Origin: Ophelia neglecta
Lineage: Eukaryota
Reading direction: 5' to 3'
Assembly (NCBI GenBank): GCA_965285935.1
Contig: OZ260661.1
Location: forward strand, 124,000,001-124,064,000
DNA: 64,000 nt
Below, piece after piece: positions 1 through 33,200 of this stretch. Within the stretch, counting starts at the first letter, position 1; each line of letters opens with the position of its first letter. The notes beneath the pieces are model-generated. The model was given only the letters and a program-made list of their open reading frames with translations. It was not told the DNA's origin and ran no database searches. Made by a program: the position numbers and the translations under genes.

Positions 1-200
1 TACTCATTCAGATGTTTACTTCAGATGCTGAAGATGAAATGTACAAGGCAGTCATCCCTTTTGTCTCCCCCCCCCCCCCCCCCCTTACCTACTCTCCCAT
101 CCCATCCCTACCCCATGTGAGCAGTGGTAAGTAGCCAACCAGAAGTACCAAAATCTCAAAGCCTCCTGTCAAGTCCATTAAGTGATGGTTTCTGACCTAC

Positions 201-296
201 CTGACAAGTGTCCAGATCACAGCAGGTCCCTGTGGCACATGTAGCATTGACAGTCAGCTTACACTCAGTCGGATCACAGCATGTTGTGTCGCAGTC
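201..296 (-). CDS. ADAM12: ADAM exon, disintegrin domain (DCDTTCCDPTECKLTVNATCATGTCCDLDTCQ)
   Basis: 96 nt, phase 0/0; acceptor ttttctccttcag, donor gtaggt; Cys spacing typical of a disintegrin domain. Confidence 0.93.
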
Positions 297-3200
297 CTGA
301 AGGAGAAAACAATACTACTGTACGGTGAAAAGAAACAACCATTCTGATAGGTCAGAATTCCGCTGTCCTCCATCATCTTGTACAATCTTCCATAGCACTG
401 AAATTTCACCTACCCTGACTGATTACTGAACTACACAAGGTGAAAAAGAATGTGAAAAGGGCATACAAATATACTAAGTAGTATCCTACTCAAAGTACTA
501 CTCATCCTTCTAGGACAATAAATCATTTTTTTGGAAAGGTTATTTGACTACCAATTCCATTTATCATCACGAGCCTGTTACTTCTTCCGTGGTGTGTCCT
601 ACCTCGACGAGACCACAGTCACACTCCTCGCCCTCCTCCACAAAGCCGTTCCCACACACGGTGTTCCCGTACAGGTCCTCGGGTAGGTTGTGAAGACAGT
701 GGTCCATCCCCTGGTAAAATGCGTCATCAAACTGCTCCTTGGAGCAGCTCGACCACTTGGTCGGGTTCTTAATACCCCTGAAAATCAACAACTGGAAATC
801 AGTGGGCTTTTTTTCGATTTTTTCCTTCAAGTTCAGTAAAGCTACATGTTTCCTAACAATGTTTTAATTATTCATACCACAGTTACTTTTAGAAGATTGC
901 ACTAAAAACACTTTACATACAATTTACCAATTAGAATTTCTGGACCCTGGTTTGAGGGTTTTTATGACCTTTTCTTGGGTTAGATGTCGATAAAGATTAC
1001 TCTGAGGTACAAGCTGTACATGCCTGGCAGCTGAGAACTCTATATAGAATCTTCAGAAAGAAGACACAAGAGAGAGAGAGTAATTAAGGGAGACTTTCAA
1101 AGAACATCATTACTGGTTTCTGACCAAACTCTACAGAGTGTAAGTTGCTTACAGCCTTTTAACTGGTCTATCATAATTACATTTACCAAGGGACATGAAC
1201 ACAGGTGAGAATTAATTTTGATGGTCACCTGATCATTCAGGATGAATCACCAGTACTAGCCAAACGGGGAATAACAACTTTACAGGCGAATAAAATATAC
1301 CATGAATGGGGAAAAACTGCCCCCAGGGTTTGGTTGTGCTTGAATAATTTTAACTATAAAATTATAATTGCTGATACAGTGTGGCGCTTGTGCTTTGCCT
1401 GGTACTGGCTGGGACATGTTCATTAAGTTCTTTTGTCTTTATTCTAATTGTACCAATTTACACCCCACTTCACACAAATCAGCAGAATTAACTACGAAAA
1501 ACACACTAGTGACTGAACAAAAAAACCAGTATTAATAGAGCCTACTGAGACATGTTTAAATGAACATGTATATGCATGATTCTATCTTTTTTAATTTATT
1601 TATAAATGAGATGTTTATGCAATTGTAACCAGCAAGAATAAAAATTTGTACAAATATGTACAAATATGGTCAATTATATAAAATGGGAAAATAAGTCATT
1701 TCATCTAATATTATAGTTAAACATAAACTAATCATTACAACAGTAATGACGAATATGGTTATGGCCACAGTAATAAACATTTTAACATTGACAGGCAATT
1801 GTCTACTTCCCCTTGGGGAAACAACCTTTCCCTCAGGGTTTACAAGCCCCCTAGGGCTGCTTTGTCATGGAGCAAAAGCTGTGCCACCCACCAAATACAT
1901 TTTAATAACCAGCCGTAAACTAACTGGTAAACATAACTGATGAGAGTACAGCTTGGGCCAGTTCTTTGGACAGTGAAGGGGTGTGATACATGTTACCTAA
2001 ATCATTATACACCATCTCAACATTGTCTAAACAGTTCAGCAGAAAAGGCGTTTATATCTGCAGGAGCCTGACTGACAACTGATGCCTATCACTTTTCCAA
2101 CTGGTAGGAATAAGTCCCAAGTATTATGAACATTGCCAATTTACAGTACCTTAAATTGTGTCAAAATCCGCCCAACAGGACCAATTTGAAAACTCTTGTG
2201 TGTGAGTAACTAGGCTGCTATCTGGCTTAGCAGGCAGATTGAACATCACATATCACTTTGAGTGAGCAATTCATATCAAGCTGAGAGAACTTTTCGTTAA
2301 GGAACGCCGAGTTGATTGAACATTGCTTTTCAGCATGGAAAGTTGATTGAACATAGCCTACGAGAGCTAACTGAGTGCTTTCATTAGATGTTAGCTCGAA
2401 CTGATAAAATCTGAAAAAAATGAGATTCCATCCGACAGAATTCAAGATCTTTTCCATGATGCAACTAATATTTCTGAGAATGCAGACGCCTTACATGATT
2501 TTGATCTTGCCGATGTTCATGACACTGCCGTTTGTGGAAGCCAGTCTGATGACTTATGGGATAGCCCCCCAGTCGACAGAACACCCCGGGAGTGGGGGCG
2601 AGGAGCCTTTCCCAGAACCTCCCTACATCCTGGTACATAAGGAGACGGAGACAGGTGTGCCAACGGGGGTCAAAGCACACAGTTGTCATGACAACCGTCT
2701 GGCAGAGAAACAATTCTACCAGTCTCTAAAAGCCATGCGAGCACAGTTGGATATCTTACAACACATGTTCACACAATGCTGTCTAGGTCAGTATAATTAC
2801 AGTGCTCAGCTACTGGTATCAATTCATATAAACAGGTCTTTTCATTTTTTATTTAGCAAAAAAGCTTAAAAGCTCAAAATAGCCAGCCCTAAATCAGCTT
2901 GTTATTTTGTGTTTCTTCAATCAGTGCTTTCTTTTCTATGCTTATTGGGATAAAAACATTCCACCATAGGGGAGTTTTTAAGAACAAGAGACATAATTAG
3001 TAGACAAAACCCTGCTACTAGCCAGCTGTCGGGCCTGACGTGGGTATTAATGGCCAGTCTTAATGCGCCCAGCTAGCGGTGTCTCCTCTGGAGAGAGGGC
3101 CTAGCTCACACAGAAGACAGCTCGGACATACTGCCAGGCCACAATCAACTTCTGTCCTACCACCAATGCTTCTCCCCAAGTCAAGTCAGATAATTAAAGA

Positions 3201-6200
3201 ATTGTTGTTAATATTAAGATAAAACAGATTCCATACACCACAATATATTATCTGGCATGACAGTTTGACACTGGGTTTAGTTATTTGAGGCATGGCTGGC
3301 TTTATTTTGTAATAAAATGTGTTTCATCTGATCCAGGGCCTATTACTGTATAATTTTTATGATATAGGGTAACATAGTATTTAATACAGAGAAGGGTTGT
3401 TGATTAGGACATCAGACAGATGAAATGGTGGCCAAAGTTTGCTTGCGAGACCTCATCTCCCTAAACCAAGTCAGGTGGAAAGTTAAATGACATTTAAAGC
3501 TCATGAATGTCCCAGTTTTAAAAATTTACGACTATCTAAATCAAAATATAAATTGATACTAGATGTAGTAAGAATTATTTAATTTTAAAACACTTGAAGA
3601 AAACTTCCTTTTTGCTTTGAAGAAATATGAGTGAAAAAAACACTTCCTGCTTGCTTTGAAGAAATATGAGAAAAAAATTTGAAGTAGGGTATGCATAATT
3701 TTAATTTTACGATTAATTTAGGACATTTGGTCTCATTACAGGCTGTCCAACAGGATATTTTTTCCCACCAGGAGGCAGTCAGTGTTACCGGGTTTCTACG
3801 GAGGAGAGGAGCTGGTGGCAAGCACAACAGATCTGCCAATCAGAGGGCAGCAATTTACTGAGTCTCCAAACCGCCTTCGAAGAGTTTACAATCACCAACT
3901 ACCTCAGTCAGAATAAAGGTAACAATGAAAGTACCCCCGATAGAATAAATGTATTTACCAGTAACTGCTTAAGTCAGAATGCAGGTCATAGTAACAAACT
4001 AACATCATAATAAAAGTTATTATAAAATCAACATAAAATAGTCCCTCCCCCTCCCGAAATGGTAAAGTGGTAAAATTGAAATCTGTTAAATTTTCCTGTC
4101 TCCAAAAAATTGTGATTTAAAGGAAATTACTATTGAAACTTGGCTGAAAGACCACCGCTCTATTCAGACCACCTGTCAATTCAGAACACTGATATCAAGA
4201 CCAAACTCTAACCTTCCAATGTGAAATAGTCTGTCTAAACAGACCACCTCTGTGATCAGACCAGTATATGCCAGTCTCATTGGGTGGTCTGAATTCCCAG
4301 GTTTCACTGTATGCCCCCATGATGAAAATTAACAGACCTCACATAATGGAGATTGGGGTAATAATAATTCACAATATACATCATCCTCTAATATCCAAAT
4401 TTAATGCTTCAGCATTATTTTAATCTTTTGTAACACAAACATGACCAATTCAATTCACGTCAATAACATCCTTTGACAGGAATTAAGATCTCAAATTTAA
4501 CACTGCATGTATCTTAACTTAAATACAGGGTCTGATGTCTAAGTTTAACAAAATAAAACAGATTTCCTGCTAACAATAGGTCCTTACCTAGAGAGCCACA
4601 AATACAAATTTTACCAAGTTCTCATGGGAATTCACGTTATTTCTACTAACTCCTTTGCACCAGTCAATGGAGCAGATAAACAAAGTCCCTGCCCTTTATT
4701 TCCTGTCAATCCGGCCCCTTTCCGAGGACAAGTAGGTTAATTGACATATCAACTCGGCGGAGCAGTCCCACCCAGGTTTATCTCACACTAGTCCCCAGAA
4801 AAGCTACTTTGGATTGAACAAGGATACAATTCCAATGGATACCAATCTCATTACAGACAGCATCAGATTTCCCCTGAGATTCTACACTAATGGCAATGAA
4901 CTGACAACCAAAGGTGTCTGGCAGTGGGGACTCGGTACGTACAATGTCTCTTACCCATAAGGCAACAGAGATTTTTTCTTTAAAATCTGTGATTTTTCAT
5001 ATATTCACTATAGTTTGTGAGGGCTACAAACTATTCTCAGGATCGTTGCAATTAAAAAATCATTTAAAACCCATTCTCTGCACAATAATAAATGGTCCAT
5101 CCATGGCAATCCTGTATTAACATATGTTCAGTACAGTATATGGGGAATTGGTTTATAGTTATGGCTTTCATGGCTCCTGTTTTACTACTGATGAATGCCT
5201 CATGTAGTGATGTACAACATAAAATTATGACATTTGGTATCATTGGGGCATCGACTTGCAGAAAATATCAATGTATCAATCACTTTTTTTATCTCTTTGC
5301 TTCAATCACATTAATCACTGTGTAGTGATACAAACAAGTAAATACACGTAGGATTCCAAAAGGCTACTTTTGGTAATTGCATCGGCGTTTCATGTGTTCC
5401 AATTACTTTTTTTAGAATCATTTTTCAGTCACCATAAAAGTAAATTGTGGAAATAAATGTTCCTTGGTCTTAGCGCAAACCTCTCTGAAATTAGCTAATA
5501 TGTCAAATTGACAAAATCTCCATCCTAAAAGCCACAAAACCTTCAGGCAAGCCCATTTTGTATTTATCAGCATGTCCCCAAGTCTCAGCAGCCAATATAT
5601 CAACTAAGCACAACATGCTAGAAATGACAAAATACATCAGTATCTCATATTTCTGGCCTCTATTCCCACAAGGACTATATATCGTTTGTAGGAGATGCTG
5701 GCGAGGTGTTCACCCATACCAACTGGGGAGTTAACGAGCCAAACGACAGCGAACTGGAGAGAGAGGAATGTGTGGAGTATAACTACAGCTATGGCTGGAA
5801 CGATGTGCCCTGCTACCTCCCCCTACGATACATCTGTGAGAGGGACATGGTGATCACTGGGGGACATGAGGGACATACTGAGTGGTGATCACACTACCAT
5901 ACATCTGTGAGAGGGACATGGTGATCACTGGGGGACATGAGGGACATACTGAGTGGTAATCTCACTGCCATACATCTGTGAGAGGGACATGGTGATCACT
6001 GGGGGACATGAGGGACATACTGAGTGGTGATCACTGGGGGACATGAGGGACATACTGAGTGGTGATCACACTACCATACATCTGTGAGAGGGACATGGTG
6101 ATCACTGGGGGACATGAGGGACATACTGAGTGGTGATCACACTGCCATACATCTGTGAGAGGGACATGGTGATCACTGGGGGACATGAGGGACATACTGA

Positions 6201-9200
6201 GTGGTGATCACACTGCCATACATCTGTGAGAGGGACATGGTGATCACTGGGGGACATGAGGGACATACTGAGTGGTGATCACACTACCATACATCTGTGA
6301 GAGGGACATGGTGATCACTGGGGGACATGAGGGACATACTGAGTGGTGATCACTGGGGGACATGAGGGACATACTGAGTGGTGATCACACTACCATACAT
6401 CTGTGAGAGGGACATGGTGATCACTGGGGGACATGAGGGACATACTGAGTGGTGATCACACTACCATACATCTGTGAGAGGGACATGGTGATCACTGGGG
6501 GACATGAGGGACATACTGAGTGGTGATCACACTGCCATACATCTGTGAGAGGGACATGGTGATCACTGGGGGACATGAGGGACATACTGAGTGGTGATCA
6601 CACTACCATACATCTGTGAGAGGGACATGGTGATCACTGGGGGACATGAGGGACATACTGAGTGGTGATCACTGGGGGACATGAGGGACATACTGAGTGG
6701 TGATCACACTGCCATACATCAGTGAGAGGGTACATCTGTGAGAGGGACATGGTGATCACTGGGGGACATGAGGGACATACTGAGTGGTGATCACACTACC
6801 ATACATCTGTGAGAGGGACATGGTGATCACTGGGGGACATGAGGGACATACTGAGTGGTGATCACACTACCATACATCTGTGAGAGGGACATGGTGATCA
6901 CTGGGGGACATGAGGGACATACTGAGTGGTGATCACACTACCATACATCTGTGAGAGGGACATGGTGATCACTGGGGGACATGAGGGACATACTGAGTGG
7001 TGATCACCCTACCATCCATCTGTGAGAGGGACATGGTGATCACTGGGGGACATGAGGGACATACTGAGTGGTGATCACACTACCATACATCTGTGAGAGG
7101 GACATGGTGATCACTGGGGGACATGAGGGACATACTGAGTGGTGATCACCCTACCATCCATCTGTGAGAGGGACATGGTGATCACTGGGGGACATGAGAG
7201 ACATACTGAGTGGTGATCACACTGCCATACATCTGTGAGAGGGACATGGTGATCACTGGGGGACATGAGGGACATACTGAGTGGTGATCACCCTACCATC
7301 CATCTGTGAGAGGGACATGGTGATCACTGGGGGACATGAGAGACATACTGAGTGGTGATCACACTGCCATACATCTGTGAGAGGGACATGGTGATCACTG
7401 GGGGACATGAGGGACATACTGAGTGGTGATCACACTAACATACATCTGTGAGAAGGACATTGTGATCACTGGGGGACATGAGGGACATACTGAGTGGTGA
7501 TCACACTACCATACATCTGTGAGAGGGACATGGTGATCACTGGGGGACATGAGGGACATACTGAGTGGTGACTACACTACCATCCATCTGTGAGAGGGAC
7601 ATGGTGATCACTGGGGGACATGAGGGACATACTGAGTGGTGATCACCCTACCATCCATCTGTGAGAGGGACATGGTGATCACTGGGGGACATGAGAGACA
7701 TACTGAGTGGTGATCACCCTACCATCCATCTGTGAGAGGGACATGGTGATCACTGGGGGACATGAGGGACATACTGAGTGGTGATCACCCTACCATCCAT
7801 CTGTGAGAGGGACATGGTGATCACTGGGGGACATGAGAGACATACTGAGTGGTGATCACACTGCCATACATCTGTGAGAGGGACATGGTGATCACTGGGG
7901 GACATGAGGGACATACTGAGTGGTGATCACTGGGGGACATGAGGGACATACTGAGTGGTGATCACACTACCATACATCTGTGAGAGGGACATGGTGATCA
8001 CTGGGGGACATGAGGGACATACTGAGTGGTGATCACACTACCATACATCTGTGAGAGGGACATGGTGATCACTGGGGGACATGAGGGACATACTGAGTGG
8101 TGATCACACTGCCATACATCTGTGAGAGGGACATGGTGATCACTGGGGGACATGAGGGACATACTGAGTGGTGATCACTGGGGGACATGAGGGACATACT
8201 GAGTGGTGATCACACTACCATACATCTGTGAGAGGGACATGGTATGTCCCTCATGTCCCCCAGTGATCACCATGTCCCTCTCACAGATGTATGGTAGGAC
8301 ACATACAGAGGGTGGTGTGGTGGTTTCATGAAAACGTTGGGGAGCTGTGACAAGTATAATACCCCATACATGTAGGCACATTGGGGGAGGGGGTTCTGTA
8401 TGGTGATTTTTCAAATGTTCATCGACCTATATTTTATAATCTGTACTGACTAAGAAGTCAATAGAGGGTATTATTATAGTTTGTGACATTTTTTATTTGT
8501 TTCTTTAGTGCCATATATAAATATTTTAGTAAATTTGTCTTTCACTTTGTAAATTGTATGATACTATCTCAGATGTGATGTTATCTCATGAACACCAAAA
8601 GGACTAACTACAAAGCCATGTTATAACAGTCATACAATTGCATATTTGTCTCCTTCTCCTAAGTTTTTAATGTCAGAGGAAGAACCTGTGGGTGAATTAG
8701 TTTAAGCCACAGTACTGAGTCCCCCCTATCTGATTGTACAGTGATCAAGTGACAAAATAAAAAGTTTTGACTGATGGTTACAAAATATGTTGTACATAAC
8801 ATATACAACAGTGGATTAAAATAAGAGTACAGAGGTGTGCTGTCTAAATATAGTTAGGGGAAATGATCCAGAACATTCTTCATCCAGGTGTGCAGGCATT
8901 TCTGTACTTATGTAATACATTTTGAGTTTATTTTCAATTTACATCATCTGTTCATGGTTGCTTCATCCTTATATTACAGGATTGGGTGATGGTAAAAGCG
9001 ACATATTCGGCATGTGTAAGGTTTTGAGACACTCGTTTGTTTTTTTCTTGGTTTATTTTCTGTTTTGACTTACCCACTGCTGGGAGCCATGATGCACCGC
9101 TCATCTGGACACTGGCAGGCCTCTGTGTCATGTGCCAGGCCAAAGTTATGACCCATCTCGTGGGCCACAGTGGTCGCCACCGGACCCACGAGAGAACTGT

Positions 9201-12200
9201 GGTCCTGAAGATCAACAAAATACATACCATGTGTACCACACTGAGATTAACTAGATTTAACGGCTTTGTATTAACGGCAAATGTGAAAGCTTCGGCGAAA
9301 GCAGCATTGGTGACAAAATAATCTAAAATATCAGTTATTTTATAACCCAACCCTAACCCAGACATCTCAATTTTGTTTTTGATATAAATGGGTAAGGGTA
9401 TGATTATTATTGTGTTCATATTAGCTCAATTTAAGAGGCCATGTGGCTTTCGCCCAAGCTTTCGCTTTCGCCGTTTTCACAAAGCCGATTTAACACATAG
9501 TGTGTCCTTGTTTTGTACATAAGTTCTTTGAAATGTCGATAGTTAATAAATAATTACTTTTATTCAAAACATACATAGTCATATACTTTTTTTTTGATTT
9601 TGTATAAACAAAAAGAACAACAGACCATAAACTTTAACACATGGTAATGAATCCAAGTCTTATAATATATTACAATTAAAGTTAAGAGTTTTGATATCTT
9701 GTTCCGTTGCCTACCATGTTGACACCTCCTGAGTATCTCCAGCTACAGATAGTCATGATGGGGGCTTTCCCGACCACCCCATCTCCTAACTTCTGGCCCC
9801 TACAAAGACATCAATTTACTTCTATAAGAACATAATATCAACACTGTCAAAGACCAGCTTTTGTTACCTGTTAAGAAAAAAGCACCAAATTAACTTTTAA
9901 GAAGAGTCTACATGAGAAGACCAAAAGAAGATTAAACCTAGTTTACAGAAAATTGTATCAGATGAGATTTCTGATTGAGAATCTCATTGGGACATCACTT
10001 TACAGACAAGACTTTTAGATGTTTGTCCATGTCCTATCCATTTAACTGTTAGCAGCTGGATCTCCATTGACATTTCTTGATAGATTCACAGTGTTTTTAT
10101 ACTCACTGAAATTAGGGAAATGCCTGACAGACCACAACTTATTAACCAATAAACACTTGACTGATATCCCTCGAGGAGATAATCCATTGCCATTAAAGTC
10201 TTGACTAATTTCCGAGTGATTGGCTAAGTTTCATGTGTAGATTGAACCAAGCCATTTGTCAACATCTGCTGGCAGGTGTTCTACAGTTAATGTTTCCTTC
10301 TGCCTTGTTGCTCTGTTCTTATGATTTTCTATCGTAAGAGAAGGATGAATAGTCTGCAGATGGAAGTTTTATACTTCTTTGATAACTCTCGGGACATGGG
10401 TGCAATGGCGTATGTTGCCACGTATTTGGGTAGCTCTCATTGAAATACTTAAAGCTGCATGTATATGAGTAGGGTACCGCTACCTAATGTGCTATGACTC
10501 GAGTGTTATAAGGTTGGAACTGACCAGAAATGTTCCCAAATGAGCATGCACCTCAACCAGGATGGACAATTGAGGGCTTTTCATATACCCCAGTCCAGCT
10601 TACAGCAGACGTCACCACAGCACCCCTCTACACAGTACTAGTGTGAGACCAAAGCTGTGATTTTGCAGTGGTAAAAGGGCCATTGTTCAATATCCCATTG
10701 TCTGAGCTACTAATCCTGAAAGCACTCTCCAATAGAAGTATTGTCTGAATTTTTTGTTTTTAAATATAGAAGGTGAGGAACAATCGAGCTGGTGAAGCCA
10801 AGGGCAATGTTAAATTCCCATGCCCCACAGAAAGTGGTCCCATACTCTGTCTGTGTATTGGTTATTGTGTATTTTACATTTCCGATATAAATTCTAGTTT
10901 TGTATTGGTGGTGGTAGTGGTAGTTGTAGACTAACGTGATGAGCTGTGCGTTGTCGTTGGGGTGTTTGGGAGAGATGTCCTGACGTCTGTAGCTCAGGAA
11001 GTTGTTCATGGTCTTGTCAGCGTTATCCTCGACCTGTATCTTATCTGACTCGATCCATGTCTCCACTCCCACCAGCGCTACGTAGATACCCAGGGGCCTG
11101 TATAACTGAGAAAATATCAAATTGTTAATTATCGCACTGATTTCATTAAAAAAAATATAAATATATTTTCTAATTAATCGTTGATCATTTTTACTTCAAT
11201 CGAATAACACTGCTGGCTTGAAGACTGGTGACAATTCTTAAAGGGATTTTATTTGAAGTGAATGTATGGGAAGTGGCAGGAACTTAAAGAGTCTGGATGG
11301 AAGTGAATGGATCTGGTAGGATTTACAGGAAGCGGAAGTCAGTGAATGGGCATTGTGTAATATAGCAGCAGCCTGAGTGGAAGAAATTGGCAGGATTTGA
11401 CAGACTTTTTACCGAGCATGGCAAAATAAGATTTTAACTTTGGCAAGAATTGTAGAGGGTATGCTTTCTGGTATATCATAACCCACAAGATATTGTTTAG
11501 CAACATCAGATACACATATAGCCTAATTGTTATTTGTTATTAAGGTATAATTATAGGCATATTTCTAAAAGCAAATGCTGGCAGTTTCCTTCGGAGTATA
11601 TGGTAGTACTCATCTATATGAAGTACCTCAACTGTACTATATATTACAATATATTATAATAATTTTGAAATGTACTCGGTCAAGCCAAAATGCTGTAAAA
11701 ACTTGCTAGGATGTATGTGTGTTTATCATTGTCCAGCATTGTGCAACACAAGACTTCTCCAGTAAACCTGATCAAAAAAATAAATCACCATAAATCACAC
11801 AACAAACAATAGATAAATAATTCATTATATAAGAAGTATCCAAGAAGTAGTATCCAGATACTTACCGAGCTGACTACATTGATTATGTCTTTAGTTCTCC
11901 GCACAACTTTCATGATGTTATATTCATAAAATTTATACTGAAAAAAAAAGATCATCCAACATATAATTTACACCAGCTTATCAAACAGCAGAAATCATAA
12001 CATTGAGAGTAGATAATGGTTATATCTTTTATGTATGAAAAGAAATATTAAAAGAAGGAGTTAAATGTATGGGTTATTGTGATATTTAATGTGCTTTAAT
12101 CAGTAATTGAGTGGTTTCCAATTTTCATACTGCTTTCTTACCTGTGCATAGTCATTGACTACATATAACTCAACTATCTTGGTGCTGCCCTCTGTGGCGT

Positions 12201-15200
12201 CATAAGGCCATAAGACTTCTCTTTTTAACTAAACAAAGCAAACAGCGTCGTAATTATTAACCACGTGTACATGTACGTCTGCTTTTGATAATAACAGAAT
12301 TCATGTTAATCAAATATGCTACATAATACAAGTACAGGTATCACAATCAGACCCCGCAAGAAGCTTACTCGTACACAAGTACAGCAGTGATTACTAATTA
12401 AATATTTAAATGCTATTTTAAAGCATTTTTAAAACAGGGTAAAGAACCATCATCATAAATTGTACATATTTTTTTAATGATACATGTAAAGCCTCTAAAG
12501 TTTTTTTTATGTTTCAGAAATAGAACGCTTATTACTAGTACACATGTACACTAGCACCTTCGTAGCTGTGTATACTACTGACACAGGAGGCTCAATCATT
12601 ACATTATTAGTACATTAGATAAGGATTTTCCTACCCTGGATTTCCTAATTTTATCATCGTTTTTTGGCATGTTTGGCACATCGCCATCTTGACCTGAAAA
12701 GGAATGTCTAGTCTTTCAACAAATATTCACGAAGCCATTACTCAAATTATATACAGCTATGGTAGAATCTTCCTAACGAGAAAATAACACATGATGAAAT
12801 TAATGAAAAGTTATATATATAAATAAATGAACATGTGCATTGGGTGGCAAATTCTTAAGGAAAGCCAGAGGTTTACAGTCGGCCAGGAACCATTAAACTT
12901 TGTTAAACACCTTGTTTTTATCTGTAGGTTAAAATAAGCTAGTTTGTATTTTGTCACCTCATCTATTTTCCTTATGTTTTCCAGAGCACATTTGTTTAAA
13001 AATGAAGAACAGATGTATTTACTGCATAAAATGATTCAAATAAAAAATATATATAAAACAAACATTAAGACAGGTATATATTGGTGGTGGCAGCGACTCA
13101 AGGACAAGATCATACATAAGGTATCAGGTCTCCTTTTTCATAAGAATATTAATTAACTTGCGTCAGAAACTTTTGGGCCCTAATATCTGATTATGAGGGT
13201 AATTAGAAGTGTACTATAAGTTTGCCTACCACATTTTAAGTTATCTGGAATTCTATCTGAATCCCTGAACAGGTAGTGCCTGTCTGATATCACAGAGGTG
13301 ATGGGTTCTATGTGGTACGCCTCACTCCCCACTGATATATAGCCACTGAAAAAACACAAGACAACCTTAAAAACACTCTTACCGCAAAATACAATGTATT
13401 AGATGACATACTGGATTGGAAAGAAAAAATACATAAAAATCTATAAATCTATGAATGCCATTAATGGGATTGCAGAGAAAAATAAAGTCATTCTTCCACT
13501 CATTTTGAAACTTTTGTGAGCAACATATAATGACTTTTTTAAGGTACATTTTGAGCTGTTGTGTGGTAGAAAACTTGTCTAATTATTCAAATATCAATGG
13601 AGCACAGAAAATACAATTAATTCTTTAATTGTAATGAATCAATATAGAGATGAAACCTTGGGTAAACTGGTTAAGTCAATGGTATGTGTTTAATTTAATC
13701 ATTTCACTCTCACACCAGAGCCTTACACCACTGAATTGAGAGGTCTCTTGGACTATTATATAAAGCTTCAGTTTAGTTGCCAAGAACACCTGGTCCATAT
13801 ATCTATAGCGCCAGGAGGCTATATTTAAAGTGTAATAAGACTTTACTTAAAGTTCAAGTGGGCTGTATTTAAAGTGAAAAAAATACAGTGTGTTAGGTGC
13901 AAGCAGGCCATTGGTACTGCTAGCTATACTGAGCATGGATGTACATGTACAGTATCATAGAGATATCATAGAGATATCACAAAGAAGTAGTAAGTATACA
14001 CATGTACTGTACAACCACAGAGAAGTTGTACATATAAACATTTACCATAGTACACAACCACAGAGAAGTTGTATGTACAGTATATCATCACAGGGAAGCT
14101 TTGTTTGACTTAGGATTTTCACCTCTCATATACCCAGCCAATGTCTTAATGTGTACCCAGAACCTACCTCCCACCCAATACTCTTCCCTTCTCCCACCCA
14201 ACTTCTCACCCCACATTCTTCCTTCCTCCCACCCCACCATCTTCTCTCTTTCTACCCAACCCCCCACACTCTGTCCTCCTCCCACCCCACACCACAGTCC
14301 TCCAACCCCACTCTATACCCTCCTCCTACCCCAAATCCTACAATCTTCCCTCCTCCCACCTCTGAGCCCACACCCCACTCTTCTTTCCTCCCAACCCACA
14401 CCCACACTCTTCCCCACGCCACACCCACGCTCTTCCCTCCTGCCACCCCACAACCCACTCTTCCCTCCTCCTACCAACCACCCCCATGCCACTCATCTCT
14501 CCTGCCACCCCACACCCCACTATTCCCTCCGTCTATCCTACACTCCTCCCACACCACATCCCTCCCATCCCTTACATCTCAGGGCCTGTTATTAGCCCCA
14601 TGCCCTCCCACCTCACCTGATGCCTTGACATGTACTGAGAGCCACTATGGACCGGGAGTGACCTCGGACATGTCCATGGTAGTAACAGTGGCTCCCATCC
14701 TGCAACAAACATCATCATTTATTCATTTATTAATCATTTTACATAAATAAATAATATATTCTTCAAACACATTGACAATAATTTCAAATTTTTCATAACG
14801 TAACATAGTTTTTTTTTAATATGCACAGACCCAGCATACAGGTACGTAATATATAGTGACGTGGTGGTGTCCTTGCAGGATTATACAGTTTAACCTTTAC
14901 ATAAAAACGGTTTTGATGAACATAAAACTGGTTTATAATATCACATACAATTATTGAAAAACTCACTTCTTTAATATTTTTATTGATAACTTCTTCACCT
15001 TCTTTTGTAAAATGTTTTTCTATATATTTGGGACTAAATAGCTGCCTGTAAAAGAAATGAGAAAAATACCAATCAACAAAGCCATCAAATGTTGTTATTT
15101 GAGTGGCCACAAATTAGTGGCAAAACTAATCAATATCTATGCTAAAAAATATTTCCTTTATAGCAGACAAAGTGTAATCAAATTCTTTAAAGAAAAAAGT

Positions 15201-18200: not shown

Positions 18201-21200
18201 CAAATCACATCAAAACACCCTAATCAAGTGGTAGACAGGGGAACACAGGTAGGACTTCTGCAAATACAATTGACCTGCCATTTATAGCAGCTAGCTACAT
18301 GCCGGGCTTCTGTGAAGGTGGATACATGCAGTCGCCTATAGGTTAGGTTATAGGTTCTGCATCATCTTGTCTTGGCTCCAATGAGATGTATTATTGAATA
18401 ATAAATTCAGGGGCACATGGGCCCTTAAAATAACATCAATGTTTGAACATGTATTATCAATCAAGTCCTCCTCTGCTTCTACTCCCATATATAGACTCTT
18501 TCTGGAAGAGAAGCCTAAGCAAACTGCTCCCACAGCAAAAATTTCACCTGCTTTTTCTGACCGTGAAGCCCTCTTTCCGGACATATATTCATTAGAGAAA
18601 AGTCAATTTTCCCGCTGCCCACTCACACATGCCTCCTTGAGCACTCAAGTCCTGATGAAATCAACAATCACCAGGGAAAACTACCAACATCAGAATGAAA
18701 TGGCCTGTGAAAACAACGGATAGCAGCAGGTAAATATTTATTATAAACTAGTTCTTTGATGAAAAACTGATGACCCCAACAGTCAAAAAAGCCTTGGGCA
18801 ACTTCCAGGAAGAGTAGTATACCCAAGGCTGACGTCGCCGGCAAATCAAAACATATAACAACTTTCAAGGTATTTGTATACAATTCAGATGTATGTTTTG
18901 TCAGCACGCTTCCAGAATTACTTCTCACCAAGGGGAAAAAATAATATTAATGTTAATTGATTAATGTTTCCTTGAGTTTTTTATATGTTTCGTATCAACA
19001 AATGCCAGGCACGACGCTACCCAAAGTGATAAAAATAGGATTTAAAAAGAAATATTATTAACATACATGTGCCATTAGCCCTAATGGGTTAATTTGGCAG
19101 CAGACATATATACAGCTGAATAAAAAACAGACTTTTCATATTTCATGCAAAAACATGCTAAATGCAATGTGCTGGTGTAATGGGAATAGGAATCTCCATG
19201 ATTAAATCACAACTAGAAAAAACATCAAAGCAATTTATAGCCCTGCATTAGGCAGTATGCATGCACACAAACTGAGCATACCATTACTGATTGAGCATAC
19301 AGTTACTGCATATAGAATTACAGCCATCTCATAAAAAAACTGTCATCAGTTTAGTAAGCTAAAAATATCTACTAAATGTTACAACAACGTAGGTTCTTCT
19401 CCAAATGATGATGCCATGACCAGGCAGACAATCAAATGTCCTTCAGTATCTTTTCTAAGCAAGGCACTGACTATTTCCTGGGGGCTGTTCTGAGACACAT
19501 GGACACAGAGCCCCTGACATTACAGGAGACATGTACCAGCCCTGAGGGGTAAGGAGAGAGACACATGGACACAGAGTCCCTGACATTACAGGAGACATGT
19601 ACCAGCCCTGAGGGTTAAGGAGAGAGACACATGGACACAAAGTCCCTGACATTACAGGAGACATGTACCAGCCCTGAGGGTTAAGGAGAGAGACACATGG
19701 ACACAGAGTCCCTGACATTACAGGAGACATGTACCAGCCCTGAGGGTTAAGGAGAGAGACACATGGACACAGAGTCCCTGACATTACAGGAGACATGTAC
19801 CAGCCCTGAGGGTTAAGGAGAGAGACACATGGACACAGAGCCCCTGACATTACAGGAGACATGTACCAGCCCTGAGGGTTAAGGAGAGAGACACATGGAC
19901 ACAGAGCCCCTGACATTACAGGAGACATGTACCAGCCCTGAGTGTTAAGGAGAGAGACACATGGACACAGAACCCCTGACATTACAGGAGACGTGTACCA
20001 GCTCTGAGGGTTAAGGAGAGAGACACATGGACACATAGCCCCTGACATTACAGGAGACATGTACCAGCCCTGAGGGTTAAGGAGAGAGACACATGGACAC
20101 AGAGCCCCTGACATTACAGGAGACATGTACCAGCCCTGAGGGTTAAGGACAGAGACACATGGACACGGAGCCCCTGACATTACAGGAGACATGTACCAGC
20201 CCTGAGGGTTAAGGAGAGAGACACATGGACACAGAACCCCTGACATTACAGGAGACATGTACCAGCCCTGAGGGTTAAGGACAGAGACACATGGACACGG
20301 AGCCCCTGACATTACAGGAGACATGTACCAGCCCTGAGGGTTAAGGAGAGAGACACATGGACACAGAGTCCCTGACATTACAGGAGACATGTACCAGCCC
20401 TGAGGGTTAAGGAGAGAGACACATGGACACAGAGCCCCTGACATTACAGGAGACATGTACCAGCCCTGAGGGTTAAGGAGAGAGACACATGGCCACAGAG
20501 CCCCTGACATTACAGGAGACATGTACCAGCCCTGAGGGTTAAGGAGAGAGACACATGGACACAGAGCCCCTGACATTACAGGAGACATGTACCAGCCCTG
20601 AGGGTTAAGGAGAGAGACACATGGACACAGAGGCCCTGACATTACAGGAGACATGTACCAGACCTGAGGGTTAAGGAGAGAGACACATGGACACAGAGTC
20701 CTGACATTACAGAAGACATGTACCAGCCCTGAGGGTTAAGGAGAGAGACACATGGACACAGAGTCCTGACATTACAGGAGACATGTACCAGCCCTGAGGG
20801 TTAAGGAGAGAGACACATGGACACACCTGACATTACAGGAGACATGTACCAGCCCTGAGGGTTAAGGAGAGAGACACATGGACACAGAACCCCTGACATT
20901 ACAGGAGACATGTACCAGCCCTGAGGGTTAAGGACAGAGACACATGGACACGGAGCCCCTGACATTACAGGAGACATGTACCAGCCCTGAGGGTTAAGGA
21001 GAGAGACACATGGACACGGAGCCCCTGACATTACAGGAGACATGTACCAGCCCTGAGGGTTAAGGAGAGAGACACATGGACACAGAACCCCTGACATTAC
21101 AGGAGACATGTACCAGCCCTGAGGGTTAAGGAGAGAGACACATGGACACAGAGCCCTGACATTACAGGAGACATGTACCAGCCCTGAGGGTTAAGGAGAG

Positions 21201-24200
21201 AGACACATGGACACAGAACCCTTGACATCACAGGAGACATGTACCAGCCCTGAGGGTTAAGGAGAGAGACACATGGACACATAGCCCCTGACATTACAGG
21301 AGACATGTACCAGCCCTGAGGGTTAAGGAGAGAGACACATGGACACATAGCCCCTGACATTACAGGAGACATGTACCAGCCCTGAGGGTTAAGGAGAGAG
21401 ACACATGGACACAGAGCCCCTGACATTACAGGAGACATGTACCAGCCCTGAGGGTTAAGGAGAGAGACACATGGACACAGAGCCCCTGACATTACAGGAG
21501 ACATGTACCAGCCCTGATTTAAGAAGAGACACATGGATGTCTTTCATAACTCTGACAGCAGCAAGTGTTACCAATCACCATTATCATGAAGATGAGATGC
21601 TGGTAACATTTTTATAGGCTCACAAATGACCATTGATTAACAGTAGCTAATCTGGCTGACATGCATTGCCTTGTAAATAGAGAATGCTGCTCCAGAAATA
21701 CTCAGTAGACTGGGACAAACTTGGAAAGAGATGAACAAGTTCCCAGTACTAAAGCTAAAACTATACACATGTACCATATTCTCTGCTGGGGCGATTAAAT
21801 AGTCATGTGACCTATGAAGAATTGAATCAAGTACTTATATTAGTTCTATAATGAAGAAAAAATTCTTCAAAACATATAGAAATGGTTGAATTGGTATTTT
21901 TAGACAATATAACCATCTGCCCTTGAAATAAACTTTTTCTGGACCCCCCCCCCCCCCCCTGCACTCCGAATATTAAGTTTAGCTTCCTCTGCAGGAGGTG
22001 ATGGGTTATCATCAACAGGGCAATGCATACATATATCTATAGGTAGGTACCACCACTGTGGGTAGTCTCAGCCCAACACCAGTTTATTAAATCCAACTGG
22101 CCGGTAATGCATGGCACATTCCTACCCCTAGCTAGCCACAACGGTGTGAAAGCATTGGCTCACCTCACAACATTGGTACACCTAAAAAAGTAGGCTCACC
22201 TAAAAGCTGTGAGGAATAATGCAGTAACTGATGAATTCTGAGCAGGCTTTTTCCAAACATAAAGCTGGTATCGTACCTCCGTAATACTGCTCAGGGCCCA
22301 GGAGGTTCACAGCTATCAGACTTCTAAATGTACAGGCATCACTATATGTAAACTTCAGACATACAGATACTAGTTGGGTTTAAGCCAAAACACCTATTTT
22401 CCGCGAGAGGCACATGTATGTTGGATCCTTCGACCCTGCTATGGAGCGACACACACATGTAGCCGAGGCTTTCTGCTCCGGATAATACTTCTGATGATCC
22501 ATCATCAAACTCTGACTACTTGACAATATACAGTACAGCCAGGCAGCATGCTCTGCCTGCCATTTTTGTTGGAAAATGGCTATATTTAACCTTGAAAAAC
22601 ACCTTCCACAAACACTATTTTAATGTGGCTGGAATAGGGCCACATAAAACTGTGATCTAATGCAAACTCGGTGAAATCCTTTGGAACAATTTGCCATCAC
22701 ATTAAAAAACATCTCCAGATAAAACACCCATCAATTTAGTGCAAAAATACATTTATTTGATTTAATTAAACCTAGAAATGTATGAGCCATGCCATGAAGC
22801 TATTTTTGTCCCTTAAGATCAACTCCTTGTTATTCCAAGAGAGCACCTTCTCCAGAGTCAGGGAGAAGCACTCTTGGCAGCTGTGAAAAGCGTTTTAGCT
22901 GCACACAGTATTTTACAAAGTGTTTTTCCATAGCAGTAGTAAGGGTCCTTGCTTGGTTTAATAATCCTGACTCTATCCTGACTTTATATGATTACTATAC
23001 AGGCTGTGCAGTCAACAAACTCCCAAGTTGATGAAAGAGAAATTGGGTAACCCTATCTGATTTCAATTGTACTGGGCTGTGGAATTAACTTCTATGTAAA
23101 TAGATGCAGAAATGGGGTGGGTTTGAAACATGTTTAAAACACATGATATTCATGGCCACCTGTTCAAATCATGAGCATTCTGTAATGGTTACCATTATTT
23201 AGCATAAAAAATTGACACAGGCCAACCCATGCAATAAATCCTATAGAGCCTGCAGCCTGAACACGACTTGTGCCAAGGTGCCACTTCTGTGTCTCAGATG
23301 AAAGCTGCATTATGGTAAAGACTGATCAATACATATAAAATTGGTACAGTAACTTGTGCGTGCTTCCCTCGGTAAAGGCTGGAGCCTCGTTCCCACATAT
23401 TGGATTGGTATTTCTGTTTAGTTTGCACTTCTCCTAATGTAGGGATTTGTTGTCACAGGGGCAGCACACTCGCTGTGCTAATACTCAAAACAGACATGCA
23501 TACTGCAGCTTTTATTTTTATGGATTTCGAGTCCACGACTTACAATTCTTTCATTTCTCTCTTAGATATAATCTAATTCTGATATGTAGCAGAGGCAGAC
23601 ACTTAGTTCTGTTTGAGTAGCTTGGTGGTAAAAACAAAAATAAAATGTAGAAATAATAACAATATTGTAGTAGAATGGGGGTGGCTTGAGTTGTTTATTG
23701 TGACGTTTCCTGCTCTGATTCACGCCTATCCGTCCTCCGGGATTTCTCCTAAAGTTTTTTGCTGCTCCAATCACAATGGTAATGTTTACAGTGCAATTTC
23801 AGACTTGTTTGAAAAGTCTCTCTCCAACACAACAAACCCCAATCCACTTACCATGTACACCTGATAAAAAAGTATGGCTTAGATATCTAAAGGCAGTCTA
23901 CCCCCCACCCCCTCCCACCCTCACCCCCCACTAACTAGAGCCTACTCCCACCCCACCCCTAACAACCTATCTACCCCCTCTTACAACCTACCGACAGCCT
24001 ACCGCAGACCATCCTCCCACCACCCCTTTAGGTACCCCTGTCCATTGTTCATTGTTTACAGGCCCATTTGGTTTCTATTTTCAGTTCATCCATCAATTAT
24101 AATATAAGGTAGATTCATGTATTTAAATTTAATTCCATTCCCATTGCCATTGGTCCTTTCCTAGTTAAATTTCCTTGTATTGCATTTCATTTCATGCTCA

Positions 24201-27200
24201 ACAGTTGATCATATTTCACTGGGAGCTCTCATGTTTTCACCAGACCCCCTAGCTATAAATGAGCCTGTGCTAGGTAACCACAACTAAAGGGGGTCTGGGA
24301 AATTACCAAGGCTATCATATACTGTATCATATACATGTGGAAGAAAGTGTTTCTATGGTAACACCCAAAGCTACTCTCAAGCCTGCTAGCCAGACTACCA
24401 ATAGTACAAGTCAGATAACTATGTGTACAAGGTTGAGAGCTATTTGTAAAAGGTGTTTGTAATGTTTAAGTCTGTAGCCTGGCTAGGGGCAGTCAGAGTT
24501 CAGTCCCCACCTGAGTCTGTAGCCTGGCTAGGGGCAGTCAGAGTTCAGTCTCCACCTGAGTCTGTGGCCTGGCTAGGGGCAGTCAGAGTTCAGTCCCCAC
24601 CTGAGTCTGTAGCCTGGCTAGGGGCAGTCAGAGTTCAGTCTCCACCTGAGTCTGTAGCCTGGCTGGGGGCAGTCAGAGTTCAGTCCCCACCTGAGTCTGT
24701 AGCCTGGCTGGGGGCAGTCAGAGTTCAGTCCCACCTGAGTCTGTAGCCTGGCTAGGGGCAGTCAGAGTTCAGTCCCCACCTGAGTCTGTAGCCTGGCTAG
24801 GGGCAGTCAGAGTTCAGTCCCCACCTGAGTCTGTAGCCTGGCTAGGGGCAGTCAGAGTTCAGTCTCCACCTGAGTCTGTAGCCTGGCTAGGGGCAGTCAG
24901 AGTTCAGTCTCCACCTGAGTCTGTGGCCTGGCTAGGGGCAGTCAGAGTTCAGTCTCCACCTGAGTCTGTAGCCTGGCTAGGGGCAGTCAGAGTTCAGTCC
25001 CCACCTGAGTCTGTAGCCTGGCTAGGGGCAGTCAGAGTTCAGTCCCCACCTGAGTCTGTAGCCTGGCTAGGGGCAGTCAGAGTTCAGTCCCACCTGAGTC
25101 TGTAGCCTGGCTAGGGGCAGTCAGAGTTCAGTCTCCACCTGAGTCTGTAGCCTGGCTAGGGGCAGTCAGAGTTCAGTCTCCACCTGAGTCTGTAGCCTGG
25201 CTAGGGGCAGCCAGAGTTCAGTTCCCACCTGAGTCCGTAGCCTGGCTAGGGGCAGTCAGAGTTCAGTCCCCACCTGAGTCTGTAGCCTGGCTAGGGGCAG
25301 TCAGAGTTCAGTTCCCACCTGAGTCCGTAGCCTGGCTAGGGGCAGTCAGAGTTCAGTCCCCACCTGAGTCTGTAGCCTGGCTAGGGGCAGCCAGAGTTCA
25401 GTTCCCACCTGAGTCCGTAGCCTGGCTAGGGGCAGTCAGAGTTCAGTCCCCACCTGAGTCTGTGGCCTGGCTAGGGGCAGTCAGAGTTCAGTCCCCACCT
25501 GAGTCTGTAGCCTGGCTAGGGGCAGTCAGAGTTCAGTCCCCACCTGAGTCTGTAGCCTGGCTAGGGGCAGTCAGAGTTCAGTCCCACCTGAGTCTGTGGC
25601 CTGGCTAGGGGCAGTCAGAGTTCAGTTCCCACCTGAGTCTGTAGCCTGGCTAGGGGCAGTCAGAGTTCAGTCTCCACCTGAGTCTGTAGCCTGGCTAGGG
25701 GCAGTCAGAGTTCAGTCCCCACCTGAGTCTGTAGCCTGGCTGGGGGCAGTCAAAGTTCAGTCTCCACCTGAGTCTGTGGCCTGGCTAGGGGCAGTCAGAG
25801 TTCAGTTCCCACCTGAGTCTGTAGCCTGGCTAGCGGCAGTCAGAGTTCAGTTCCCACCTGAGTCTGTGGCCTGGCTAGGGGCATTCAGAGTTCAGTTCCC
25901 ACCTGAGTCTGTAGCCTGGCTAGGGGCAGTCAGAGTTCAGTCCCCACCTGAGTCTGTAGCCTGGCTAGGGGCAGTCAGAGTTCAGTCTCCACCTGAGTCT
26001 GTAGCCTGGCTAGGGGCAGTCAGAGTTCAGTCTCCACCTGAGTCTGTGGCCTGGCTAGGGGCAGTCAGAGTTCAGTCTCCACCTGAGTCTGTAGCCTGGC
26101 TAGGGGCAGTCAGAGTTCAGTCCCCACCTGAGTCTGTAGTCTGGCTAGGGGCAGTCAGAGTTCAGTTCCCACCTGAGTCCGTAGCCTGGCTAGGGGCAGT
26201 CAGAGTTCAGTCCCACCTGAGTCTGTAGCCTGGCTAGGGGCAGTCAGAGTTCAGTCCCCACCTGAGTCTGTAGCCTGGCTAGGGGCAGTCAGAGTTCAGT
26301 CCCCACCTGAGTCTGTAGCCTGGCTAGGGGAAGTCAGAGTTCAGTCTCCACCTGAGTCTGTAGCCTGGCTAGGGGCAGTCAGAGTTCAGTCCCCACATGA
26401 GTTTGTAGCCTGGCTAGGGGCAGTCAGAGTTCAGTTCCCACCTGAGTCTGTAGCCTGGCTAGGGGCAGTCAGAGTTCAGTCCCCACCTGAGTCTGTAGCC
26501 TGGCTAGGGGCAGTCAGAGTTCAGTCTCCACCTGAGTCTGTAGCCTGGCTAGGGGCAGTCAGAGTTCAGTCCCCACCTGAGTCTGTAGCCTGGCTAGGGG
26601 CAGTCAGAGTTCAGTCTCCACCTGAGTCTGTGGCCTGGCTAGGGGCAGTCAGAGTTCAGTCTCCACCTGAGTCTGTGGCCTGGCTAGGGGCAGTCAGAGT
26701 TCAGTCTCCACCTGAGTCTGTAGCCTGGCTAGGGGCAGTCAGAGTTCAGTCCCCACCTGAGTCTGTAGCCTGGCTAGGGGCAGTCAGAGTTCAGTCCCCA
26801 CATGAGTTTGTAGCCTGGCTAGGGGCAGTCAGAGTTCAGTCTCCACCTGAGTCTGTAGCCTGGCTAGGGGCAGTCAGAGTTCAGTCTCCACCTGAGTCTG
26901 TAGCCTGGCTAGGGGCTAGGAGTTCAGTTCTCAGCAGACCAGCTCTCCCCACATTCAGATCAGGTTAACTAGATCTGTTCCTCATTTCCACCTGGCCCGG
27001 CTTGGCTATAGTCATTAACAGACTATCTTCTAAGAGAATACATGATACACAAGACACCGGCAATGGCTACTATTCTAGTGATCTGCCCAGCGGGATATTT
27101 GTATTCATGTCAAGGGGGGCCATCAGTGATGATGGAAGTATGAGCAAACCTTGGCCCTGGGACACAGAACCTTGGTCCCCAGGACACTGGTGAAAACAGC

Positions 27201-30200: not shown

Positions 30201-33200
30201 TGGTCTGATACCTACATGGATTCGTTTGGCATACTTTTGCTGCCATTTCACTGCTGTAGCCCTCTTTATGCTACATACTATTGTCATATGCAGTGCTGCC
30301 ACACTGGAAGCTGACCCAGTCCTTGTGATGTCATCTCCGACAAGCCCTATTACTTATGACGGCAACTCATGGGAATAATGTTATCTACCAGAGCACCAGA
30401 TGACCAGACTGGTGAGCTGCAGTTGTACAAATTATTAAAGTTAGTAAATGAGCCAGACACCTCCCTCCCTCCTGTAATTATCATGTGGAATGTTCTTTTA
30501 GTTCATGGGGTACACAACACTTCCTTTTTTTGACAGACTAATCATCCTTGTAATTTCGGAAACAAATTCAATATCTCAGACAGATTTGTAATAAATATGT
30601 TTATTTCCTGATGGATTAAAAACCTTTGATGATAGTTGATTTTATGCTTGTCCTTGTTGATTTATCCTGGTGAGTTTACACTGTACTCCTGGTTCTTGTT
30701 GACCTAGATATCTGCTGTTGACCCAGAACTGAGTTGGCTGTTAAAATTAGTCCACATCTATTTACATACATAAGTTGTGTAGCAGCCTTCCCTTGACTGG
30801 CGTTAGGGGGCTCTATTGTTTAAATGACTATATGACCTATACCAGTACTGACAACATTATCACGCAGCATATTACCTAGACCTGACAAACATTCTGCTCT
30901 GATGAGTGGTTTACAACTCAATGAGCTGAAGATGGAGGCACAGTGAGGGGGATACATGTATGAGTGGTATACTACTCAATGAGCTGAAGATGGAGGCACA
31001 GTGAGGGGTGATACATGTACCAATGGTATACTACTCCATCAGCTGAAGATTGAGGCACAGTGAGGGGTGATACATGTAAGAGTGGTATACAACTCAATGA
31101 GCTGAAGATGGAGGCACAGTGAGGGGTGATATATGTATGAGTGGTATACAACTCAATGAGCTGAAGATGGAGGCACAGTGAGGGGTGATACATGTACCAA
31201 TGGTATACTACTCCATCAGCTGAAGATTGAGGCACAGTGAGGGGTGATACATGTAAGAGTGGTATACTACTCAATGAGCTGAAGATGGAGGCACAGTGAG
31301 GGGTGATATATGTATGAGTGGTATACTACTACTCAATCACCTGAAGATGGAGACACAGTGAGGGGTGATACATGTACGAGTGGTATACTACTCCATCAGC
31401 TAAAGATGGAGGCACAGTGAGGGGTGATACATGTACGAGTGGTATACTACTCAATGAGCTGAAGATGGAGGCACAGTGAGGGGTGATATATGTATGAGTG
31501 GTATACAACTCAATGAGCTGAAGATGGAGGCACAGTGAGGGGTGATACATGTACAGTGAGGGGTGATACATGTATGAGTGGTATACTACTCAATGAGCTG
31601 AAGATGGAGGCACAGTGGGGGTGATACATGTACAGTGAGGGGTGATACATGTACGAGTGGTATACTACTCAATGAGCTGAAGATGGAGGAACAGTGATGG
31701 GTGATACATGTACAAGTGGTATACTACTCCATCAGCTAAAGATGGAGGCACAGTGAGGGGTGATACATGTACAGTGAGGGGTGATACATGTACGAGTGGT
31801 ATACTACTCAATGAGCTGAAGATGGAGGAACAGTGATGGGTGATACATGTACAAGTGGTATACTACTCCATCAGCTAAAGATGGAGGCACAGTGAGGGGT
31901 GATACATGTACGAGTGGTATACTACTCAATGAGCTGAAGATGGAGGCACAGTGAGGGGTGATACATGTACGCTGTCTTGTGAAGGGTGTAAACAGAACAC
32001 CTGCCAGTGGTCTTAAAACAGCAGCTGGCAGACCTAGGACACCTCAGGATTAATAAACAAGACAATACTAGTGTTAAACTCACCAAACCTCCTGTTACAG
32101 GTCAATCAAAGAGCACAAAGACACCTCTCAGAGGACACAAAAGCTTAATACTTGCACATTTCACCCTGTTTACTGTACAAAGGCAGTAAGTTATTCTGAC
32201 ACTTAACATCCTAGGTTTACTAGCGTTGTCCCCAGGGAACCTCACAGAGTGAGACAGCTGTCAGAGCCATTTTAATAAAGAAAATGGTTTCTTGGGGATG
32301 CAAGACATCCTTGAGAAAAACATATACATGTATAAAGAATAAGAAATGTGCCTAGAAAGAATACATTGCTTGATATCTCAAGATGCGATTCTACAGCAGG
32401 AACAGTTCTTTCATCCTCTAGTTTTGTCTTTTATCACCAAAGGCCAGGAAATGTTTCATATAACTATATTCTCAATGCAATCAATAACGAATTCCGAGGA
32501 CACTGACACCTACATTGTATTGACCTTTGTTTTAAAGTCAGATTCTGAAGTTTTACACCCTGAAGGCGACAGAGGCATGGCATACAATATACCATGTTAC
32601 AAAACTTGTATAACAAAGATTTCCTGGCTAACAAAACATTCAGGGAAGAGAGAGTCTAGACCAAATAGATTGATTGCTCTTGAACAAACTTTATCTATCG
32701 ATATCACATATGAACTTTTTTGAAACTGAGCTAAAAACAATAGCAAGATTTATATTGGTGTTATGGAACATTGGGAAGGTGAAGGTGAGTTGGACCCTTT
32801 CTGTAATGAAAGCTGAAATGATATGTATTGACAAACCTTTTCTGCATTATAAGGTTTAATTTAATACATGTAACATCACCTCTTTGTATTTAATGCAAAA
32901 TGGCATATCACATTGTATCTTTTGAACCACAGCTGGCTTGAAGCAAAGTGTTTTTGCCAACTGGGAGTTCCAGGCCTTGATATTCAGTGTAAATAAACCA
33001 GCAGTCACTGAAGGTCATTAACATGACGAGCAGAGTGAGTATACCACCATCATAACATTTAGAAGGCAGGATAAAGACCAGCCATGACACTGTTCCAGGA
33101 GGCTGGGTCCATCCACACTCCTCTGTGAAACATTGAGTCATCTGATACAGGACAAAACTCCTGCAGGAGTTCTATACTCCAGATCATGAGATGAAGATTC

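Follow-up and report, generated by a model that had tools for sequence, protein, structure and literature searches.

Analysis of a 64,000-nucleotide stretch of the Ophelia neglecta genome (assembly GCA_965285935.1, contig OZ260661.1, positions 124,000,001 to 124,064,000; hereafter the window, numbered from its first letter) identified a C-type lectin gene of the secreted type that is intact, single-copy and made up of four exons. The gene lies on the + strand, and a single intron of a metalloprotease gene of the ADAM family, encoded on the opposite strand, encloses all of it. An initial annotation made from the sequence alone had described a complete gene of this kind, and both the exon structure and the domain content agree with that description. 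The same annotation had also suggested that lectin and protease form a coupled locus; the evidence presented below argues instead that the nesting is most likely incidental. The ADAM intron would then be the mere location of the lectin gene, which would be transcribed from its own promoter, and the lectin gene would be the cause of the 8.3-kb length of the intron.

The lectin gene extends at most from position 2480 to 8761. Exon 1 (2495-2786) starts at the ATG at 2495 and ends in phase 1 at the donor G/GTCAGT (2786/2787; here and below, the slash within the letters marks the exon border). Another in-frame ATG is present upstream at 2480, and an in-frame TAA stop at 2405. Exon 2 (3742-3918) is delimited by the acceptor ttacag/G at 3742 and the donor G/GTAACA at 3918/3919, and exon 3 (4857-4934) by the acceptor ttacag/A at 4857 and the donor G/GTACGT at 4934/4935. 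Exon 4 (5692-5888) follows the acceptor ttgtag/G at 5692 and closes with a TGA at 5886-5888. Every border is canonical AG/GT, and all three introns are in phase 1, splitting codons for G, D and G. The canonical borders and consistent phase bear out the positions of the four main exons in the initial annotation, and the order of exons and domains stands. Its estimate of about 238 residues does not, since the in-exon TGA gives a predicted protein of 247 amino acids (aa) from the ATG at 2495 or 252 aa from the ATG at 2480.

Domain scans and homology searches, done exon by exon, assign a distinct part of the protein to each exon. Exon 1 encodes a signal-like hydrophobic N-terminus, a Pro/Glu/Gly-rich spacer and a Cys-flanked, helical-looking neck of about 30 residues. 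With numbering from the ATG at 2480, residues 4-17 have a Kyte-Doolittle hydropathy of about 2, and the sequence is hydrophilic (negative values) thereafter. The residues V-E-A precede the likely cleavage site, with small residues at positions -3 and -1, so that the lectin would be secreted by way of a cleavable signal peptide. The neck contains one Cys at its start and a CC pair just before the domain. Exon 2 encodes the first third of the C-type lectin domain (CTLD), with Cys1 and the additional pair of Cys that marks the long form; exon 3 supplies the middle of the domain and reads RFYTNGNE where a WIGL motif is usual. Exon 4 carries the sugar- and Ca2+-binding third (EPN, WND, Cys2-Cys4) and a short tail. 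The Pfam Lectin_C profile (PF00059) matches exon 4 over profile positions 68-107 with 26.3 bits, above the cut-off of 22.6 (E 1.3e-5), and exon 2 over positions 2-35 with 20.5 bits, just below that cut-off (E 8e-4); the two matches are colinear in profile order. Six Cys are found in the translations, namely the C..C at the start of exon 2 and QQIC within it, and EEC, VPC and YIC in exon 4.

The binding half of the domain resembles soluble, Ca2+-dependent lectins of known structure. The residues of Ca2+ site 2 in exon 4 (NEPND...EREEC...GWNDVPC) align with their counterparts in codakine and conglutinin. A search of the PDB with exon 4 gave 47 matches at E <=0.01, the best being codakine (E 1.7e-8) and conglutinin (4e-8); collectin-11, mannose-binding protein (MBP) and SP-D are the other nearest solved relatives of this half. 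Exon 2 matched many CTLDs, dozens of them generic. Codakine, conglutinin, collectin-11, MBP and SP-D are all Ca2+-dependent EPN-type sugar binders. With bivalve codakine and these collectins, the window lectin has in common a signal peptide (predicted here), a neck, a C-terminal lectin domain, and the EPN, WND and WNDVPC motifs. It differs from collectins in having no collagen region, in its extra neck Cys, in reading RFYTNGNE for WIGL, and in an identity of about 40% or less. Its domain is also split over three exons, while collectin lectin domains are usually encoded by one exon. Taken at face value, the product would be a protein of about 250 residues with a signal peptide, an acidic/proline-rich spacer, a neck and a long-form domain with an EPN/WND Ca2+ site. 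Its likeliest role would be soluble glycan recognition of the pattern-recognition or agglutinin type, and the Cys-flanked neck may link lectin chains into oligomers, as in many invertebrate immune lectins.

Comparative data show the pattern expected of a spliced gene under selection. A profile-free search of 1.84 billion representatives with exon 4 returned many generic multi-CTLD proteins together with P0021, a 58-aa fragment that is 74% identical over the last exon and, like the window lectin, ends soon after the domain. The coding sequence of P0021 lies on metagenome contigs from Tara Oceans, five in number and 513-652 bp long (L020-L024), which contain orthologues of exons 3 and 4; one of them, L022, also contains the last 18 nt of exon 2 and has in common with it the last five codons and the donor position. 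The acceptor and donor positions of this Tara orthologue are identical to those of the window gene at all three splice positions, whereas its introns are much shorter (192 and 106 bp, where the window gene has 938 and 757 bp) and are unalignable. Amino-acid identity is 72% for exon 3 and 77% for exon 4 (to the M after ICERD). The lectin Cys are all kept in the orthologue wherever it covers them, and the Ca2+ site 2 residues are identical. Over 77 codons, the Nei-Gojobori method gives a pN of 0.16 and a pS of 0.97, the latter saturated, and the contrast between silent and replacement changes is highly significant (Fisher p 1.5e-26). The low pN against saturated silent divergence demonstrates that the lectin gene is under strong purifying selection across a deep divergence and is not a pseudogene; the ratio near 1 that the initial annotation had named as the mark of a pseudogene is not what the comparison gives.

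More distant homologues place the gene in a recognisable small CTLD subfamily (P0021, P0056, P0104, P0110, P0120). Its members have in common the motif RFYTSGNE, the motif GWNDVPCYLPL(R/K)YICE and the intron position before the last exon; the exon ahead of that intron can be seen in the Tara contigs and in L027 and L028, and there its end agrees as well. Three homologous loci (L026, L027 and L028) have the same acceptor position ahead of the last exon and the motif GWNDVPC..P..(Y/W)ICE; L027 and L028 also carry RFYTSGNE, and their preceding exon ends where exon 3 of the window does. In P0104, P0110 and P0120, the last lectin exon runs on into Ser/Thr(/Gln)-rich, mucin-like tails of 150-200 residues, which the window lectin and P0021 do not have; the sources of these tailed homologues (L026, L027, L028; P0104, P0110, P0120) are an NCBI assembly, one Logan run and one metagenome. 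The subfamily, defined by RFYT(S/N)GNE in place of WIGL and by GWNDVPCYLPL.YICE, therefore has two forms, one short and secreted and the other with a mucin-like tail, and it occurs in marine metagenomes. A word-index protein search returned P0021 alone for exon 4, no match for exon 1 (ORF 2420-2866, residues 26-122) and no match for exon 2. A scan of JGI metagenomes with exon 4 found distant CTLDs only, at 39-43% identity.

Within the 762-Mb genome, exon 1 is single copy and the best paralogue of exon 2 is just 41% identical. These two observations mark the lectin gene as old rather than a recent duplicate. Three public runs, all from one sample, cover the stretch; their contigs are continuous through the introns, which identifies them as DNA and makes them informative for alleles only. 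Coding alleles differ by substitutions throughout, with no frameshift, indel or stop. Exon 1 shows six non-synonymous and three synonymous codon differences and no indel, exon 4 shows one conservative replacement and one silent change, and exons 2 and 3 show no allelic differences. Variation in this sample is concentrated in one part of exon 1, where positions 2543-2709 hold 11 single-nucleotide polymorphisms (SNPs) in 167 bp, against 4 SNPs in the 955-bp intron 1. Selection on the N-terminal spacer that is either relaxed or diversifying could account for this dense diversity.

The 3' end of the gene coincides with a long tandem repeat. A 71-bp minisatellite of about 33 copies (5823-8243, + strand) starts inside exon 4, its first copy encoding the last residues of the lectin and the stop, and the remainder lies in either a 3' untranslated region or a 3' intron. 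At its end the array is joined by about 49 bp that repeat it exactly in inverted orientation (8244-8292). The sole AATAAA or ATTAAA on the + strand between the in-exon stop and the ADAM exon is the AATAAA at 8756-8761. The initial annotation had conjectured a terminal micro-exon (8509-8520, + strand; C-H-I-stop) joined to exon 4 at 5849. Its acceptor, tttctttag/T at 8508/8509, is strong. However, the required donor, ACATG/GTGATC at 5849/5850, is weak and recurs in every minisatellite copy, and at the homologous place the Tara orthologue has AT rather than GT, followed by 10 more codons to a TGA. Because the donor is weak, repeated in all copies and absent from the orthologue, the micro-exon finds no support, and the in-exon stop at 5886-5888 is a simpler and more economical model than splicing from 5849 to 8509. 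The lectin domain is complete under either model. A likeness of the 71-bp unit to the 3' flank of the Tara orthologue was also considered and rejected as chance, given that 44 of 500 shuffles reach its score.

The host gene is well defined on the - strand. An upstream ADAM frame (13183-13398) contains a cysteine-switch-like PDNLKCG, and the frame at 10713-11195 matches positions 27-99 of the Reprolysin profile. The catalytic exon (9204-9074), which contains the zinc site HEMGHNFGLAHD and runs into the Met-turn region, matches Reprolysin positions 122-167 (E 3e-10). It is followed, across a GT..AG intron of 8296 bp (778-9073), by an exon encoding the end of the metalloprotease and the start of the disintegrin part (777-603; Reprolysin 171-200), and then by a disintegrin exon (296-201; Pfam Disintegrin 14-44). 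L033, immediately below the window, contains open frames for the ECD loop and for further disintegrin, Cys-rich and EGF-like parts. The host thus has the organisation that defines an ADAM, namely a Reprolysin domain of the HExxHxxGxxHD type followed by disintegrin, Cys-rich and EGF-like parts. A small exon for Reprolysin 100-121, expected within 9205-10935, was not found by a simple motif search. The exons that flank the 778-9073 intron cover adjacent positions of the Reprolysin profile, and therefore no ADAM exon is missing between them. This confirms the earlier proposal that a single host intron holds the whole lectin gene on the opposite strand.

The host intron is also as unusually large as had been proposed. 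The next ADAM intron downstream measures 306 bp. An ADAM paralogue on C8 (L034, G000:C8:2721800-2723400), 63-64% identical over the two flanking exons, has an intron at the same position and in the same phase of only 564 bp, which is therefore too short for a four-exon nested gene. The window intron is large because a gene lies in it, and that gene brings with it a 2.4-kb minisatellite and a high-copy repeat in its intron 2.

Such an arrangement is ordinary in animal genomes. Nearly 10% of Drosophila genes are nested, about 71% of those in antisense (PMC5174743), and nesting is usually interpreted either as the neutral arrival of genes in long introns or as a mildly harmful cause of interference (PMC5174743; also PMC8467205, PMC11694760, PMC3786989). 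Known antisense nested genes, such as TIMP in synapsin and 2mit in Drosophila timeless2, are likewise small genes with their own promoter, in one host intron and on the opposite strand (PMC3786989, PMC5174743); the window lectin differs from them in having three introns and in spanning 3.4-6.3 kb. A full-text literature search turned up no description of an ADAM gene with a lectin nested in it, a weak negative. The nesting is real, and the pair is unreported rather than remarkable.

Several points weigh against reading the locus as an intact lectin gene that is independent of its host. The hydrophobic-core motif WIGL is missing from exon 3, its position reading RFYTNGNE; this replacement is likewise conserved in the Tara orthologue, L027 and L028, and for that reason it is a subfamily trait and not damage. 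The sole public runs that cover the stretch are DNA contigs from one sample, with no transcript evidence among them. The comparison with the Tara orthologue bears on the end of exon 2, exon 3 and exon 4, leaving the exon 1/exon 2 junction, the start codon and the 3' end as predictions from the window sequence. The predicted sugar specificity, which would be of the mannose/N-acetylglucosamine/fucose type, has the motifs as its sole basis. Finally, the probable independence of the lectin from its host is argued from base rates and from one paralogue.

The alternative that survives best is a regulatory one, in which the antisense lectin and the ADAM gene affect each other's transcription through interference, with mutually exclusive expression, or through shared enhancers, with co-expression, and the arrangement is kept by selection. 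The geometry permits it: convergent or overlapping transcription would run through 6.3 kb of the host intron, and use of the AATAAA at 8756 would bring the 3' end of the lectin gene to about 300 bp from the catalytic exon. Nested genes that interfere with each other's transcription are on record from Drosophila (PMC5174743) and from mammals (PMC11694760, PMC3192792). However, the literature reads such interference mostly as a cost and not as a designed switch (PMC5174743), and the nearest ADAM paralogue has the same intron without space for a nested gene. Regulatory coupling is thus considered unlikely. In a stronger version, the lectin would already have occupied this ADAM intron before its lineage parted from the deeply diverged planktonic species of the Tara metagenomes, with antisense transcription gating the full-length, catalytically competent ADAM, or the reverse, as an old protease/lectin switch. 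The 205 bp past the stop of the Tara orthologue contain no ADAM-like frame, although contigs of at most 652 bp are too short to show nesting, and this version is judged improbable. If the nesting were old and the expression of the two genes linked, the locus would be a neat case for transcriptional interference; nothing here so indicates.

It is similarly improbable that the locus is a silent or decaying copy, whose frames remain intact but which is no longer expressed, for example because the 3' minisatellite has disabled it. The 2.4-kb array does begin in the last coding exon and lies between the stop and the sole canonical poly(A) signal, and exon 1 has many non-synonymous allelic differences. 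On the other hand, frames, splice sites, Cys and Ca2+-site residues are all intact, and the exons contain no indel or stop in any allele. Purifying selection with silent sites saturated, at a locus of which there is no other copy, points to a functional gene.

A protein partnership of the kind known from snake-venom RVV-X, with the lectin as a non-catalytic subunit disulfide-linked to or recruited by the surrounding ADAM, is barely credible, even though the spare neck Cys (the CC pair and the one at the neck start) could make inter-chain bonds and RVV-X light chain 1 is among the matches of the first third of the domain (E 3e-4), because that match is no better than those to dozens of generic CTLDs and gene neighbourhood alone is weak evidence of binding. 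The parallel to the snaclec light chains of such P-IIId enzymes is that a C-type lectin fold is considered together with an ADAM-family protease, as here. Snaclecs are without a Ca2+/sugar site and pair by loop swapping. In contrast to these proteins, which have lost the site, the window lectin keeps EPN and WND in its binding half, and the 47 PDB matches of exon 4 include no snaclec. The coupled protease/lectin locus of the initial annotation accordingly gains no support, the lectin being collectin- or codakine-like and the intron of the C8 paralogue having no room for a nested gene, and no result points to a functional link between lectin and ADAM.

With incidental nesting as the preferred reading, the locus is mainly a matter of annotation. 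Gene callers could miss or fragment a conserved lectin that lies antisense in an ADAM intron, and the run of its last exon into a minisatellite may confuse models of the 3' end.

A few further features of the locus and its surroundings were observed. An Rfam scan of window positions 1-12000 gave no match. Intron 2 of the lectin gene contains a very high-copy interspersed repeat at about 4150-4390, where the summed contig depth in the three DNA runs is 10^4-10^5 times that of the flanks and where many contigs end (4185-4312); it is probably an element resembling a short interspersed element or a miniature inverted-repeat transposable element (SINE/MITE-like). The window as a whole is rich in tandem repeats, with further long minisatellite-like arrays at 14101-14750, 19455-21534, 25596-26968, 30975-32043 and 51223-51839, and these arrays give repetitive open frames on one strand. 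Upstream of the catalytic exon of the C8 ADAM paralogue, a segment with the acceptor and roughly the first twelve codons (through DHNWSAAPVATT) is present in two copies about 190 bp apart, which is a local tandem duplication.

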